Of a DNA stretch of 64,000 nucleotides, positions 31,457-62,668 are shown piece after piece (the first letter of the stretch is position 1; every line of letters starts with the position of its first letter). The notes under the pieces are model-generated. The model did no database searches. It saw only the letters and a program-made list of their open reading frames with translations, and was not told the origin of the DNA. Where the stretch lies: sequence record NC_061446.1; one strand, given 5' to 3'. The position numbers and the translations under genes are program-made.

Positions 31457-32563
31457 TCAGTCTGCCTTAGTGAGTCCCAGATACTCAATCAGATTGCGTA
31501 GCTGGTCGTTATACCCACCTTCGATTAGCGCTCGCGCCATTGCGACGTGGTTCGAGTTAATCGTCCGCACCACTTTAGCCTGATACTCAGGAACGTTCTG
31601 CATGTTCTGGCTCAGGTTGTAGAAGTAACTACGAACGAAGTTGGTTCGTTCCACGTTGCTCGCTTCCATATCGCTTGTGTCCTGCGTAGGAGTCAGCAGC
31701 AGGTAGAGCGCAGCAAGTAGTTCAGGACTCTGGTCAACGATAGGCGATACCAACGACGCAGCAATCTTCGTCAGTCCTTTCGCAACAAAATCAACCACAG
31801 TCTTCTCGATGAACGCTGTACCTGCTTTACCTACGTTTGGCAAATACAAGCCAGGCAGGATGTAGATGCAGAAGTAAAGCGGAAAGTCTTTGCGCATCAC
31901 GTCAGAGATAAGCATCTCCGAGTAGTCTTTCCAGATGTTAACGTTGAAGTGCCATTCATCGTAAGGCACTGTACGCATCAGGTTCGACACTGACAGGTCT
32001 TTCACTTGGTTAGCCTGCGACGCAAGATCGCGAGCACTCTGCGAAGGACCAAGGTTCGAACTTGATACCAGCTGGACGTAGTTGCGTGTAACAGCACCAA
32101 CAGTGTTGTACACAACGTTCAGCATTTCAACACCATTACCGTTCAGCGCAAAGATAACCGAACGAGGAAGACCGATAGTGATGTACTCGTTATTATTGTC
32201 AACGCCCCACAAGCGCCAGTAACGCCCGCGACCGAGTTGAGTCATCGGCTGCGGGAGAATACGGTTAGCGCGAGGTTTCAGGCAGAACGTGAAGCAGATA
32301 CCGCTGTCAATCATGATCACTGAATCATCAGGACGATTCGAATAACCCATCGACATATCGTTATCCGTCGAGTACACGTTCACCAGAGTGAAGTTCAGCG
32401 ACTTGGTGAAAGGCATCTGAGCTTCAATCAAATAGGCGAGGACTTGACGAATGATAGTATCGAGCACATAAGGAGAAGCGCTACGCATTTGTTGTGGCCG
32501 ATACTGACCACCATACGTATTCTCCTTGAATGTGCGATCTACCTTGAAATGCGTTAACGCCAT
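31457..32563 (-). CDS. Hypothetical protein
   Basis: 368-aa ORF coupled to the upstream gene (TAATG). Confidence 0.7.
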   Translation of the reverse strand: MALTHFKVDRTFKENTYGGQYRPQQMRSASPYVLDTIIRQVLAYLIEAQMPFTKSLNFTLVNVYSTDNDMSMGYSNRPDDSVIMIDSGICFTFCLKPRANRILPQPMTQLGRGRYWRLWGVDNNNEYITIGLPRSVIFALNGNGVEMLNVVYNTVGAVTRNYVQLVSSSNLGPSQSARDLASQANQVKDLSVSNLMRTVPYDEWHFNVNIWKDYSEMLISDVMRKDFPLYFCIYILPGLYLPNVGKAGTAFIEKTVVDFVAKGLTKIAASLVSPIVDQSPELLAALYLLLTPTQDTSDMEASNVERTNFVRSYFYNLSQNMQNVPEYQAKVVRTINSNHVAMARALIEGGYNDQLRNLIEYLGLTKAD

Positions 32564-35944: not shown

Positions 35945-36454
35945 TTAGGAGCGCCTGTTGAAGTTCAGCCAGTCTTTCCACCAATACGTAACGGGCTTGT
36001 TTTGCTTGAGTGCGTAGTCAATACAGTTCTGCGTACCGGAGGGTGCACCACAACACAATGAGATCAGGCGATCAGTTTCATCAACCATATAGTGATTGCG
36101 CTTGTTGAGTGCGAACCCAGCTTGACCGTCCATGTGAAGCCAGTCTTCTTTTGATGTAACTATTCTTACTTCGTGGCTTTTATTAAGAAGACCATCAAGT
36201 TCAATCACGCTACTGATTGGCCAGCGAGCATTGAACCCAGGATAAGGTAGACAGGAAACAACTTTATGTCCTTGGTCGATAGCAGCAGTCGCTACAGCCA
36301 TATCAAAGCCAAGAGCGCACCCGACGTAGATGATTGCATCGTCGTCCAGTGCGAGTAATCTGCGATGTGCGAAAGTATACAGGCGATCTTTTGCCTTAGG
36401 GCTGAATCCACCCAACGATTGTGGGCGATGACCAGTGAAGGATATCTTTTCCAT
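35945..36454 (-). CDS. SLOG-superfamily protein (YspA/DUF1273-like)
   Basis: ISFTGHRPQSLGG, GCALGFDMAVA, KRNHYMVD and SGTQNCIDYA motifs. Confidence 0.8.
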   Translation of the reverse strand: MEKISFTGHRPQSLGGFSPKAKDRLYTFAHRRLLALDDDAIIYVGCALGFDMAVATAAIDQGHKVVSCLPYPGFNARWPISSVIELDGLLNKSHEVRIVTSKEDWLHMDGQAGFALNKRNHYMVDETDRLISLCCGAPSGTQNCIDYALKQNKPVTYWWKDWLNFNRRS

Positions 36455-36460
36455 ACAGGG

Positions 36461-36469
36461 TATTTACAG
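36461..36469 (-). promoter_or_regulatory. Class 1 motif CTGTAAATA
   Basis: Exact copy 6 nt upstream of the SLOG gene ATG. Confidence 0.6.
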
Positions 36470-36493
36470 AAGCACGTCCATGTGCCGATACAA

Positions 36494-47520: not shown

Positions 47521-48810
47521 TCACTTCTTCTTTTTCTTTTTCTTTTTCTTCTTAGGCTCGTCGTCTTCTTCATCGTCGTTGCCTAAATCAACAGTCAACT
47601 TACCGCTGTAGATGTTCGCCATCACTTCGGTAATTCCAGTCTCCAGCATAATATCTGCCGGCACCGAAGTTGAGTTGAATGCCACTTCTGCATCAGCCAG
47701 AGCTTTCTGCAAATACACCAAACTGACCAGATTGACTTTGATGTTGTCTTTCTTGATCATGTTCATGAACATCTTGAGACCCGCAGACTGCCACTTATTC
47801 GTTTCGGCGTAATGCCCCAACACACCGTGAATAATCCAACGAGCTTTCGCTACGATTGCACGAGGGTTGTTTGCTTCACGCAGGAACTGAATAACACCGA
47901 TCAGGTCCATAGACAGATAAGCACCAATCATCTGAACTGCTTTCGCTTCCATGTCGATTTCTGGATCAGCAGCAGCCAGTTCAGCAACGAGGTTCTTATC
48001 AAAGTCTTCACCACCACGAACAGAGGCGTAGATGTTTTGCAGCATGGTGATTGCACCACGCATCTGTCCACCAGCGTACTCTGCTACCTGATGAAGTGCC
48101 GCTTCTGCTTTATCACGCGCCTTGTCTTTCTTCGGCAGGATATCAAGCTGACCACTGATCTCAATCAGGCGTTTATGAATCACGTCAGTTGCAATCGGTC
48201 TGATCGGCAGTTGCGTCATACGACTGATCATCGTGCCTTTCATCTTCTCAGGGTTCGTTGTTACGAAGATGAAGACTACGTGCGCTGGAGGCTGTTCGGT
48301 AATCTTGAGCAGCTTGGATTCAGCAGCACTGGACATGAGGTGCGATTCGTCGAAGATGAACACACGACGTTTGAACATCGGGCTTAACGGGGCCGAGTCA
48401 ACAATCTTCTGTGAGCCTTCAACTTTACCTGCATCGCCGCCCATATCGAACTCTTGTTCGTCAGGATGTGCGCCACGGTCGTGCATCTCACACGAACGAC
48501 ACTTACCGCAGGCAGAGAACGAATCGCAGTTGATATACTTCGCCACCAGACGTGCGAACGTTGTCTTGCCTGAACCAAGATGACCTGTGATAATCATTGT
48601 TGACGGAATCGTTTTCGACTTCTGCCAACCCTTCATGATCTTCACGATGTGATCTTGACCCACGTAATCTTCGATACGCTTCGGTCGGAACTGATCTGCA
48701 AAGTTAACCGTGGTCAACTCAACAGACTCGGAAGAACCGCTTTTCTTTTTCGATGGCTTATCGTCACCGAACGAACGCGACTTCTTCTTTTTCTTTTCTT
48801 CTTTCGCCAT
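47521..48810 (-). CDS. dnaX: Clamp-loader AAA+ subunit (DnaX gamma/tau-like)
   Basis: RPKRIEDYVGQDH, GHLGSGKTT, Zn module CDSFSACGKCRSC, IFDESH, LLKITEQPP...FIFVTT. Confidence 0.88.
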   Translation of the reverse strand: MAKEEKKKKKSRSFGDDKPSKKKSGSSESVELTTVNFADQFRPKRIEDYVGQDHIVKIMKGWQKSKTIPSTMIITGHLGSGKTTFARLVAKYINCDSFSACGKCRSCEMHDRGAHPDEQEFDMGGDAGKVEGSQKIVDSAPLSPMFKRRVFIFDESHLMSSAAESKLLKITEQPPAHVVFIFVTTNPEKMKGTMISRMTQLPIRPIATDVIHKRLIEISGQLDILPKKDKARDKAEAALHQVAEYAGGQMRGAITMLQNIYASVRGGEDFDKNLVAELAAADPEIDMEAKAVQMIGAYLSMDLIGVIQFLREANNPRAIVAKARWIIHGVLGHYAETNKWQSAGLKMFMNMIKKDNIKVNLVSLVYLQKALADAEVAFNSTSVPADIMLETGITEVMANIYSGKLTVDLGNDDEEDDEPKKKKKKKKKK

Positions 48811-48846
48811 TTTACTTCGCCCTTTATTTTGATGCGTTACACCAGT

Positions 48847-48855
48847 AATTTACAG
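48847..48855 (-). promoter_or_regulatory. Class 1 variant CTGTAAATT
   Basis: Upstream of the clamp loader gene. Confidence 0.55.
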
Positions 48856-48949
48856 ATTTTAGACAAAAAGAAAGGACCACATCTCAAAGTGAGAGGGTCC
48901 TTATTTATAAGGTGTTGGATGATAACACATCGGCAGTGGGCGCTGACGA

Positions 48950-49147
48950 TTAGGCAAAGCACATTTCCCAGCGTGGTACAACGCGGAAGAACTGCTTAAA
49001 GTTGGACGGCGGATTCTTCTTGATTGATTCAAGTTTCTGTTCCACTACGTCATAATCTTTTATGCCACTCTCTACGGTGTGAGTGGTGAATGTACCGTCA
49101 GCCTGAATCAAGTCGGCGACAACACGGTAGCTTGGTTTACGAAGCAT
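48950..49147 (-). CDS. Small hypothetical protein
   Basis: 65 aa, AGGAG RBS, CTGTAAACA upstream. Confidence 0.65.
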   Translation of the reverse strand: MLRKPSYRVVADLIQADGTFTTHTVESGIKDYDVVEQKLESIKKNPPSNFKQFFRVVPRWEMCFA

Positions 49148-49187
49148 CTATTCTCCTGTGTAAAAATTTTCTCGTTCTTCTGAATTA

Positions 49188-49196
49188 TGTTTACAG
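49188..49196 (-). promoter_or_regulatory. Class 1 variant CTGTAAACA
   Basis: Upstream of the 49147 start. Confidence 0.5.
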
Positions 49197-49239
49197 TTTA
49201 CTGCGAGTAGTCACACAAGAATAAAGTCAGACAAATCTT

Positions 49240-49572
49240 AAACTCCAATAGACTCTCATGGAAAGCATATTGGAGTCCACCCTCGCCAGATGACGGTCCA
49301 GCCAGGGCTTTCTCCCCGTGTCTTTCAATTGCACCGACACGGTAGCGCTTGCGGTCTTACGCTCCCTGTGGCTTGCGAACATATCGGCAGGTAGCAGGGT
49401 TCGCAGCCTAGAGCAGCCGCTTTCGGCCATTAGCGATAACGCGGTGTTACGCTAGTTGGCCTGACTCTGTGGCCGAGTCCGTACAAAAAAGAGTTCGGCC
49501 TATCCCCAAATTCGGCAAAAGAAACAGGCCGAACTAAACAGTCAGCGCAAACTCCTTATGCACTGTTTTGTA
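49240..49572 (-). ncRNA. Candidate structured non-coding RNA (no class recognised)
   Basis: The longest gap without a credible gene (only a 67-aa ORF lacking an RBS) is tiled by at least 8 inverted repeats. Strand is inferred from the upstream CTAATTT and the U-tract. Confidence 0.5.
49484..49535 (-). terminator. Terminator-like hairpin inside the candidate ncRNA
   Basis: Perfect 10-bp AGTTCGGCCT/AGGCCGAACT stem followed by CTTTTTT on the minus strand. Confidence 0.65.
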
Positions 49573-49579
49573 CTGTTAC

Positions 49580-49586
49580 AAATTAG
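49580..49586 (-). promoter_or_regulatory. Class 2 motif CTAATTT
   Basis: Upstream of the candidate ncRNA; no gene follows. Confidence 0.45.
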
Positions 49587-49614
49587 AAACATCCTGCAAT
49601 AAATCAGACAATTC

Positions 49615-50202
49615 TTAGTCTAACATTGGAATAAGATTTTGCAGAAAATGCTCACGGTCAAACGACGAAATTCTGTGCGGATGATCAATGTGCATGTTCC
49701 ATGGTTTGTTGAATAGCAGTACGCTACGAGGCAGCACCAGTTGCTCACCGACGCGAGTGAACTTATCCCGCACGGCAGTAACAGGATTATCATCGACAAG
49801 GACGTAGGTACCTTCGCCGTGTACTTCGTTCAGATACGCAATCTTGTCAGGATGCTGGCGGCTATCCAAAACATGAATGTGATCGAACAACGACAGGTGC
49901 TTCTCCAAAGACTTGCGCGTGTTGCGTTCGCCTTTAGGGTGATAGCCTCTGTGTGTACAAATACCCGCACTGAAACCTTCACGTACCAACATCGCAACCG
50001 TCTGGATGAAGTAGTCACGCATGTTGGCTTCGAGCATAAAGCGGCCGTCTTCCAGCATATCAATAAACGGCTGCTTACCATTCTCAGGCGTGATGTAGGA
50101 ATCGGTACCTGGATAGATTCCCCAGTTCATCAGATAGCACAACATAAAGTTATGCGTGTCGAATGCTGTGTCGTCCATGTCGAAGAAAATCTTCTTAATC
50201 AT
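49615..50202 (-). CDS. HAD-superfamily 5'(3')-deoxyribonucleotidase-like phosphatase
   Basis: IFFDMDDT, ICTHRG, DKIAYL, LVDD and LFNKPWN motifs. Confidence 0.8.
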   Translation of the reverse strand: MIKKIFFDMDDTAFDTHNFMLCYLMNWGIYPGTDSYITPENGKQPFIDMLEDGRFMLEANMRDYFIQTVAMLVREGFSAGICTHRGYHPKGERNTRKSLEKHLSLFDHIHVLDSRQHPDKIAYLNEVHGEGTYVLVDDNPVTAVRDKFTRVGEQLVLPRSVLLFNKPWNMHIDHPHRISSFDREHFLQNLIPMLD

Positions 50203-57754: not shown

Positions 57755-57761
57755 GGCAAAC

Positions 57762-58127
57762 ATGGAACACGAACAACTGCTCGCTCTCGTTAAAGATGTA
57801 GTGTCTGAATTTGGCACTCCTGTATACCTCGATCGTGGTCAGGTTGGCGAGAACAGCCGCACGTATGCCACTATCGAAACTCTGATCAACGTTCAGTCCG
57901 ACGCGCAAGGCACGACGCTGCTGCAAGATCTGAAAGCGAAGATCGCAGAGTATGTTGAACTGCTGCATACCGAAGGTGCAACGCGCTCTATTGACGGAGC
58001 CATTCAGCGTCTGGAACCTGTTACTCAGGGTCAGAAGTTTACCTACCGCGACCCGATGGTAAACGAAATTCCCAACGGTGTGCTGTACTCTGTCTCCATT
58101 GGTTTTCCCATGTTTGTGGCCAATTAA
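57762..58127 (+). CDS. Hypothetical protein
   Basis: Start moved to ATG 57762 (MEHEQ) after GAGG. Confidence 0.7.
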   Translation: MEHEQLLALVKDVVSEFGTPVYLDRGQVGENSRTYATIETLINVQSDAQGTTLLQDLKAKIAEYVELLHTEGATRSIDGAIQRLEPVTQGQKFTYRDPMVNEIPNGVLYSVSIGFPMFVAN

Positions 58128-58128
58128 T

Positions 58129-58137
58129 CTGTAAATA
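58129..58137 (+). promoter_or_regulatory. Class 1 motif CTGTAAATA
   Basis: Exact copy on the plus strand upstream of plus-strand gene 58174, so orientation follows gene direction. Confidence 0.7.
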
Positions 58138-58173
58138 TCCTTACTTGGTTAACATGGCTCGTGGGATATAGAA

Positions 58174-62659: not shown

Positions 62660-62668
62660 TATTTACAG
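62660..62668 (-). promoter_or_regulatory. Class 1 motif CTGTAAATA
   Basis: Exact copy upstream of the primase gene. Confidence 0.7.

Follow-up and report, generated by a model that had tools for sequence, protein, structure and literature searches.

A conserved RNA structure is very probably encoded on the minus strand of a 467-nt gap in the replication module of an Erwinia jumbo phage, to judge from the base-pair substitutions found among its relatives. The predicted RNA contains an H-type pseudoknot, followed by a module in which two mutually exclusive helices, A:B and B:C, are probably both conserved. A cis-acting conformational switch in the transcription unit of the replication genes was the best explanation of its function, and the chances that it is right or wrong were judged to be about even. 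The element is of a familiar kind, namely phage RNAs that are structured and combine a pseudoknot with a helix switch. Its family and the wiring of the switch are new; the family is regarded as new because no Rfam family, no annotation and no description in the literature searched was found for it.

Genomic context of the gap

The window analysed was a stretch of 64,000 nucleotides from sequence record NC_061446.1, and its source was Erwinia jumbo phage pEa_SNUABM_30 (Alexandravirus, 259.8 kb). The gap (49148-49614 of the window) showed 100% identity to positions 173148-173614 of the pEa_SNUABM_30 record, and both genes bordering it lie on the minus strand. In the sense of transcription, the 5' neighbour encodes a 195-aa HAD-superfamily protein, whose PHROG matches were polynucleotide-kinase/phosphatase-like families and for which a PDB sequence search was uninformative. 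The 3' neighbour encodes a 65-aa protein (start codon at 49147) and is followed by the gene for a 429-aa clamp loader. Homology searches with the 65-aa protein (Pfam, PHROG, PDB sequence) returned nothing informative, and its gene was absent from the JA-type phages described below. At both termini of the clamp loader (47521-48810, minus strand) there are low-complexity tails rich in lysine; the long A/G homopolymer-like runs in their coding sequence are potential slippage sites.

The gap was conserved at 70-100% identity in 46 phage records, which belonged to Alexandravirus, Sasquatchvirus Y3 and the unclassified SNUABM_25 group, and no feature was annotated within it in any of the 46. The GC content peaked at 57.5% at 49300-49499, compared with 39-50% in the surroundings, in line with the GC-rich region described in the initial annotation of this DNA. 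The same annotation had placed the element in the largest intergenic gap. This may not hold strictly, as a crude tiling with ORFs of at least 50 aa left other gaps that were as large or larger (31721-32562, 35985-36493, 2193-2687 and 57755-58173).

Search for known RNA families

The whole window was searched with Rfam 15 (4227 models, including riboswitches, ribozymes, 6S, SRP, RNase P, GOLLD/ROOL/HEARO and T-box), and no match reached the gathering threshold. At E<=10, the region 49100-49650 gave only junk matches of at most 19 bits, and in five diverged relatives no match overlapped the element. ARAGORN found 0 tRNA and 0 tmRNA genes in the window. These results agreed with the initial annotation, which had recognised no hallmarks of tRNA, tmRNA or other known RNAs. 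Its proposal of an undescribed phage non-coding RNA was supported by these searches, by the 46 records with no annotation and by the strong covariation described in the next section; the ribozyme that it had offered as the other possibility gained no specific support, with no Rfam ribozyme model matched at E<=10.

Strand, covariation and extent of the RNA

The minus strand of the region 49225-49600 folded to -146.6 kcal/mol (z = -4.8; 0 of 100 shuffles), and the plus strand folded to -121.5 kcal/mol (z = -3.3). When RNAalifold was applied to the 22-sequence alignment, energies of -92.8 and -45.9 were obtained for the minus and plus strands, respectively. The final model contained 260 G.U cells versus 24 A.C cells, the latter being the pattern expected of a plus-strand RNA, and its pairing amounted to 92.6% when it was read as minus-strand RNA and to 82.8% when it was read as plus-strand RNA. 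The functional strand of the structured RNA is the minus strand because of the RNAalifold energies, the excess of G.U over A.C, and the location on this strand of the flanking genes and of a terminator-like hairpin with a U-run.

Covariation was studied in an alignment of 434 columns and 22 relatives, the tree of which is shallow and includes many near-identical Korean isolates. In this alignment, 92.6% of the cells of the 111 modelled pairs were paired, compared with 31-45% in controls in which the partners were slid by 1-3 columns. Compensatory changes, with both sides changed, were present in 35 of the 111 pairs, and the observed score was reached by 0 of 500 shuffles. The core alone, without the 5' domain, gave the same covariation result. 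Compensatory substitution beyond the controls is what is expected of a structured functional RNA, and collecting homologs for covariation, which had been recommended at the outset, gave a strong signal.

The features of the model are listed below in the order of transcription.

49573 to 49481, minus strand: 5' domain (clamp helix, P0 and T1), taken from the MFE fold and pair conservation
49573-66 with 49488-81, minus strand: clamp helix, GUACAAAA with UUUUGUAC, invariant
49565-59 with 49549-43, minus strand: hairpin P0, 3 compensatory pairs, invariant GGAGU in the loop
49535-20 with 49507-492, minus strand: terminator-like hairpin T1, followed by 6 U, 6 compensatory pairs
49479 to 49463, minus strand: hairpin P1, GACUC/GAGUC with GGCC in the loop, invariant and so providing no covariation evidence
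49461 to 49425, minus strand: long hairpin P2, invariant loop ACACCGCG, 2 compensatory pairs
49420-10 with 49365-51, minus strand: P3, which encloses P4; 3 compensatory pairs in P3c
49408-399 with 49380-70, minus strand: P4, loop GCUACCU, 7 compensatory pairs
49360 to 49354, minus strand: invariant junction GUAAGAC inside the 3' strand of P3
49348 to 49316, minus strand: H-type pseudoknot with crossing stems S1 and S2 and an A-rich loop 3
49348-44 with 49335-31, minus strand: pseudoknot stem S1, GCGCU with GGUGC, 2 compensatory pairs
49342-36 with 49322-16, minus strand: pseudoknot stem S2, identical to P5, 5 compensatory pairs
49315 to 49279, minus strand: segment A with P6; GGAG at 49315-12 plus AAA
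49308-297 with 49290-279, minus strand: hairpin P6, loop CCGUCA
49278-68, minus strand: segment B, GGACUCCAAUA, the 5' strand of P7
49250-40, minus strand: segment C, UAUUGGAGUUU, the 3' strand of P7
49278 to 49240, minus strand: P7, formed by 49278-68 with 49250-40 (B:C) plus an inner stem and loop

The RNA core comprises approximately 240 nt (49479-49240), and the length increases to approximately 335 nt if the 5' domain, from approximately 49573, shares the transcript. The initial annotation gave an extent of 49240-49482 and listed the stems in plus-strand coordinates; the core is covered by that range, and the structure reaches further, to approximately 49573, through P0, T1 and the clamp helix. 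Five of the seven stems of its multi-branched drawing were retained, namely 49242-50/49268-76 (P7) and 49425-40/49446-61 (P2), both conserved in the relatives, 49316-22/49336-42 (P5), conserved with compensatory changes, 49374-80/49399-405 (P4), conserved with the 7 compensatory pairs listed, and 49463-67/49475-79 (P1), invariant in the relatives. The other two stems did not survive the pair counts. The enclosing stem, 49301-07/49364-72, was only 53-70% paired, with one of its pairs formed in 1 of the 22 sequences, and the AGCG/CGCT stem, 49344-47/49360-63, was 78% paired; neither stem had the support of a compensatory change. The bases of both stems were assigned to the better-supported P6, P3 and pseudoknot S1.

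Hairpins of the 5' part

The U-run after T1 comprised 6-12 U in all 22 relatives, and its length (49485-49491 in the window) varied from 6 to 12 U even among otherwise near-identical relatives. With its covarying hairpin and U-run, T1 is a candidate intrinsic terminator; the consensus scan made no call for it, its loop being longer than 8 nt. A helix around T1 and its U-tract was found with unrelated sequences in three lineages: GUACAAAA/UUUUGUAC, and UGCACG/UGUGCA and GCGUUU/AAACGC, the lineages with other sequences being pEa_SNUABM_5 and fHe-Yen9-02. The conservation of this helix bracketing T1 and the U-tract implies that some transcription reads through T1, and it appears that transcripts reading past T1 carry a selected structure. 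In pEp_SNUABM_52, the loop of P2 contains a 10-nt tandem duplication.

The P3 domain and the pseudoknot

P3 of the SNUABM_25 group carries an insertion of 2 bp that was matched on both strands (GCGAGG/CCUCGC versus GCGG/CCGC). The pseudoknot was identified when the interval from GUAAGAC to GGGGAG was searched without bias for the H-type pseudoknot with the best score, in 19 distinct sequences from eight lineages. The same topology was the best-scoring one in all 19 sequences, and its score was reached by 0-5 of 200 shuffles. Compensatory changes were present in both crossing stems, as expected of an H-type pseudoknot. The sequences of S1 were GCGCU/GGUGC, ACGUU/GACGU, GGGCGCG/CGCGCCU, GGUGUG/CGCACC and AAGCGC/GCGCUU, depending on the lineage, and those of S2 were CCGUGUC/GACACGG, CCCUC/GAGGG, CCCAC/GUGGG and CCUCU/AGAGG. 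The third loop was A-rich and 6-9 nt long. The end of the pseudoknot was flush with GGGGAG, except in fHe-Yen9-02, where it was located 3 nt upstream.

Two alternative helices after the pseudoknot

P7 is a nearly perfect hairpin with a continuous 11-bp base and an inner stem, 17-20 bp altogether. Its 5' strand, segment B (..ACUCC), also serves as the 3' strand of P6 and can pair alternatively with the upstream segment A (GGAG..), which closes P6, or with the downstream segment C (..GGAGU), which forms P7. In Alexandravirus, the overlap of A:B and B:C consists only of the invariant GGAG/CUCC, 4-5 bp, and carries no covariation information. In JA13, L042, L191 and fHe-Yen9-02, the formation of B:C dissolves the entire A:B helix. 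In these four distant lineages, the predicted energies of the two states were comparable (e.g., -21.3 and -32.8 kcal/mol in JA13), and A and C were identical at 7-10 of 12 positions and were both complementary to B, with a sequence that differed between lineages. At position x3, B was U/G/C/C, A was A/U/G/G and C was A/C/G/G across these lineages. At position x1, a change from A to U in B was paralleled by a change from U to A in A as well as in C. The internal loop of A:B had become Watson-Crick paired in Y3. Because changes in B were matched in both A and C, both helices appear to be under selection, i.e., the RNA would be a conformational switch, and A:B and B:C were considered probable as two conserved, mutually exclusive helices. 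Mutually exclusive helices that share a strand beside the sensor domain are a property of riboswitches, and in the present RNA A, B and C covaried together across lineages.

The other property of riboswitches, an alternative helix that is an intrinsic terminator or sequesters a ribosome-binding site, was not found. No lineage had a U-tract after P7, and P7 did not overlap a ribosome-binding site, the Shine-Dalgarno sequence of the 65-aa gene being approximately 90 nt downstream. A promoter motif, described below, also lies between the RNA and the next gene. Since there is neither a U-tract nor an overlap with the ribosome-binding site and a probable promoter intervenes, the read-out of a classical riboswitch is missing, and the same observations count against a cis switch in general. 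The interpretation of the GGAG motifs as Shine-Dalgarno mimics or parts of a leader-peptide gene was rejected: no start codon is conserved after C, and the loop of P0 keeps GGAGU, not a full Shine-Dalgarno sequence.

Distribution and lineage variation of the family

A covariance model was built only from the 22 close relatives. It found full-length syntenic homologs in pEa_SNUABM_5 (Rivsvirus; 41 bits) and in two IMG/VR contigs (33 bits) and, with lower scores, full-length syntenic matches in Dickeya phage JA13 (Salmondvirus; 24.5 bits) and Yersinia phage fHe-Yen9-02 (16.9 bits). More JA-type (Salmondvirus-like) copies were present in the contigs L042 (111 kb) and L191 (257 kb), and the short metagenome contig L124 contained an intermediate form of the RNA. 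The JA-type RNA is a reduced form in which P0/T1, P1, P2 and the loop motif of P4 are missing. A core common to all members consists of P3 with GUAAGAC, the pseudoknot, GGGGAG, P6, ACUCCAA and P7.

The position of the terminator depended on the lineage. It was located 5' of the core in Alexandravirus, Y3, SNUABM_5 and fHe-Yen9-02 and 3' of the core in the JA-type, in which the RNA directly follows the HAD stop codon and is itself followed by a strong terminator. The stretch 3' of the RNA in the JA-type (L034 3795-3885; L042 985-1055; L191 2380-2455) contains CTATAAA/CTAAAA, the conserved sequence AUUACCCUG and this strong terminator, and may represent a separate very small transcript.

In fHe-Yen9-02, the RNA match lies under an annotated 68-aa "hypothetical protein", and the true neighbour is a homolog of the 65-aa gene. 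Hypothetical CDSs were annotated over the RNA homolog at L033 3765-3971 (fHeYen902_106c) and L023 2630-2755 (pEaSNUABM5_00214); one of these two CDSs is on the opposite strand, and each is probably a spurious call over the RNA gene.

Pattern scans for A..B..C in metagenome and genome contigs gave, beyond the known phage contigs and L124, only chance matches, which had neither the upstream GUAAGAC/pseudoknot region nor a covariance-model match. Protein-anchored searches with the HAD-like protein and a clamp-loader alignment recovered the same clade only, plus one new JA-type contig, L191. The family appears to be confined to one clade of Enterobacterales jumbo phages (Erwinia, Dickeya, Yersinia), because the motif scans of metagenome and prokaryotic genome collections otherwise gave chance matches only.

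The RNA occupied one place per record, with one covariance-model match in the 64-kb window, and a repeated mobile element was rejected for this single copy and for its neighbours, the HAD-like protein, the 65-aa protein and the clamp loader. Exactly two copies of the 11-mer TTGTCTGAYTT are present on the minus strand, at 49601-49611 and 49224-49234, bracketing the structured gap; its count is not above chance for the window. A mobile element based on this flanking repeat was likewise rejected, the repeat not being conserved outside the Alexandravirus, Y3 and SNUABM_25 groups.

Transcription signals around the RNA

A consensus promoter and terminator scan of 48700-50000 made no calls. Two candidate promoters are listed below.

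49611 to 49582, minus strand: weak candidate promoter of the host type directly behind the HAD stop codon, TTGTCT (49611-49606), an 18-nt spacer and TCTAAT (49587-49582)
49196 to 49181, minus strand: CTGTAAA promoter-like motif, located between the RNA and the 65-aa gene, outside the fold

TTGTCT and TCTAAT were invariant in the 22 relatives, and the 17-18-nt spacer between them was variable in sequence. This pattern hints at a sigma-70-like promoter, which was not called by the sigma-70 scan because position 2 of its -10 hexamer is not A.

The motif CTGTAAA(TA) recurs 30-45 nt 5' of many start codons, on the coding strand and often right after a terminator. Its sites are at 58129 on the plus strand and at 62668, 54985, 49196, 48855, 46241, 35929, 28556, 19219, 15790 and 9901 on the minus strand, of which 49196 lies ahead of the 65-aa gene and 48855, just after a terminator, ahead of the clamp loader. 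CTGTAAA(TA) is probably a phage-specific promoter, because PaBG, which is related to this phage group, has a sigma-70-family factor of its own (PMC7412058). The RNA is located upstream of the motif at 49196 and would therefore not simply serve as the 5' UTR for transcripts initiated at this motif. The space that separates the 65-aa gene from the clamp loader contains a clean terminator hairpin with a U-run (48855-48905, minus strand), and AAAATCTGTAAAT comes immediately after it. This terminator-promoter cassette ahead of the clamp loader recurs in the JA-type phages.

Comparison with known regulatory RNAs

The structure described here resembles the operators of T4 replication genes (the gene 32 pseudoknot, gene 43, RegA) as a phage RNA structure with an H-type pseudoknot among replication genes, and this likeness suggests, by analogy, autoregulation by a replication protein. 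However, each T4 operator is a short structure adjoining the ribosome-binding site, whereas the pseudoknot in the phage RNA (49348-49316) is approximately 170 nt upstream of the next start codon (49147) and belongs to a multi-domain fold with no sequence similarity to these operators; the arrangement of the gene 32-type operator, with the structure abutting the ribosome-binding site, is not found here. As a long near-perfect hairpin between early-operon genes, P7 is similar to RNase III hairpins (T7 R1.1, lambda sib/N leader) and, by analogy with them, could define the 3' end of the RNA. Unlike in those hairpins, a strand of P7 is also conserved as the partner of another helix.

GOLLD, ROOL, HEARO and the T4 stable RNAs C and D are likewise ornate, conserved, phage-borne RNAs, but the present RNA matches none of their models, is smaller and is found in one clade of Enterobacterales jumbo phages at one fixed locus. 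A superficial likeness to T-box leaders was also observed, with AGGGUGGA resembling the start of the T-box sequence, a codon-like loop (CCGUCA) and alternative helices. The T-box assignment was rejected: UGGN is not conserved (UGGA, UGAA and CUAA occur), and no Rfam T-box match was obtained. Unlike a T-box leader, the RNA lacks a terminator and the Stem I architecture. Such leaders are found mainly in Gram-positive bacteria, not in Gram-negative hosts such as those of these phages.

Proposed function and alternatives

According to the preferred explanation, the RNA would be made within the transcription unit of the replication module, either by read-through of T1 or from the promoter next to the HAD stop codon, and would work in cis as a conformational switch. 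The A:B pairing would close P6 and stack on the pseudoknot. A small ligand, a metal ion or a phage protein might stabilise the pseudoknot together with the A:B stack and in this way set the ratio of A:B to B:C, and this ratio would decide whether the long P7 duplex forms. P7 would be a determinant of transcript processing or stability (e.g., an RNase III-type hairpin), so that its formation would modulate the transcripts reaching the 65-aa and clamp-loader genes. The parts of this explanation differ in strength. A cis-regulatory output is proposed only tentatively, with the balance of probability somewhat against it. The boldest version is a new class of jumbo-phage-specific pseudoknot switch, in the broad sense a riboswitch, that responds to a ligand or protein and whose read-out, in place of a terminator or a ribosome-binding site, is P7 as a processing or stability hairpin gating the replisome genes; it is a speculative proposal of low probability. 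If true, the P7-hairpin read-out would introduce a regulatory logic that is so far undescribed in phage replication modules.

The main rival, an RNA that acts in trans, was considered less likely. It would be a stable stand-alone molecule, for example an RNP scaffold, a decoy or sponge for a host or phage protein, or a ribosome-directed RNA presenting GGAGU, which is processed from, or terminated within, the early replication operon, and the two-state module would be its own working cycle. A large, ornate fold with the conserved loops CCGUCA/CCGACA, ACACCGCG, GCUACCU and, in P0, GGAGU would suit such an RNA, as would its single copy per genome, the terminator before or after the core by lineage and the separate promoter motif of the downstream gene. 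The JA-type form, which directly follows the HAD gene and ends at a strong terminator, is similar to an sRNA derived from a 3' UTR. The lineage-variable position of the terminator fits a cis element equally well, and mutually exclusive helices that are conserved occur more typically in cis switches than in stand-alone RNAs; the 65-aa neighbour, with no informative homology and absent from the JA-type, was also counted against this alternative. A new class of classical metabolite or ion riboswitch, tuning the replication genes to nucleotide or ion status, appears unlikely. Its aptamer would be P3 with the GUAAGAC junction and the pseudoknot, and A/B/C would be its expression platform. The covarying pseudoknot with its A-rich third loop and the invariant junction purines are indeed like those of pseudoknot-aptamer riboswitches (preQ1-II/III, SAM-II/V, fluoride), the pair of mutually exclusive helices with a common strand, directly 3' of the pseudoknot, is like that of helix-swap riboswitches, and a HAD phosphatase-like protein and a clamp loader would be fitting nucleotide and replication enzyme neighbours. 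However, at 240-335 nt the RNA is far larger than the pseudoknot riboswitches named and, unlike them, has no match to an Rfam model. Moreover, its platform controls neither a terminator nor a Shine-Dalgarno sequence, and the next gene lies beyond a promoter motif. The number of universally conserved nucleotides is small, and its occurrence in one phage clade and a single genomic context offers no regulon-type evidence.

Three further alternatives are less probable by far. A self-cleaving or otherwise catalytic RNA is very unlikely: a conserved pseudoknotted fold with invariant junction nucleotides is generic evidence for it, and the search at E<=10 that matched no ribozyme model stands against it, together with the failure to recognise any conserved cleavage-site architecture and any repeat or mobile-element context. 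The location inside the replication module would also be appropriate for a replication origin or a single-strand initiation signal that folds as ssDNA, in which strand-specific folding with G.T wobbles is allowed. Such a DNA-level element is nevertheless extremely improbable. The origin reading was rejected for the lack of an inflection of GC skew at the site, there are no iterons and no AT-rich unwinding element, and the pseudoknot with an A-rich loop, the terminator-like hairpin and its U-tract on the same strand, and an orientation that agrees with that of transcription point to RNA. That the gap merely codes for a 67-aa protein (ORF 49227-49430, minus strand) or is a chance GC-rich relic has a practically negligible probability. 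The ORF is present in the window and in three close relatives, but in most relatives it is truncated, frame-shifted or absent despite the conservation of the nucleotide sequence, it has no Pfam or PHROG match, and the substitutions track base pairing, not codons. The initial annotation had named conservation of this ORF as a protein as a finding that would speak against an RNA, and the broken or shifted frames show the opposite.

Significance

Jumbo phages are largely unannotated and, to our knowledge, their non-coding RNAs are almost unstudied. The element described here represents a new RNA family with good support; it contains a pseudoknot, and the comparative evidence for its two alternative conformations is unusually clear. 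At least two annotated "hypothetical proteins" in the relatives are probably mis-called over the RNA gene. Should the switch prove responsive to a ligand or to a phage protein, it would represent a new sensor class. The phages that carry the element in their replication module are under development for the biocontrol of fire blight and soft rot, and the element offers a tractable model for the timing or tuning of replisome genes in a large lytic phage.
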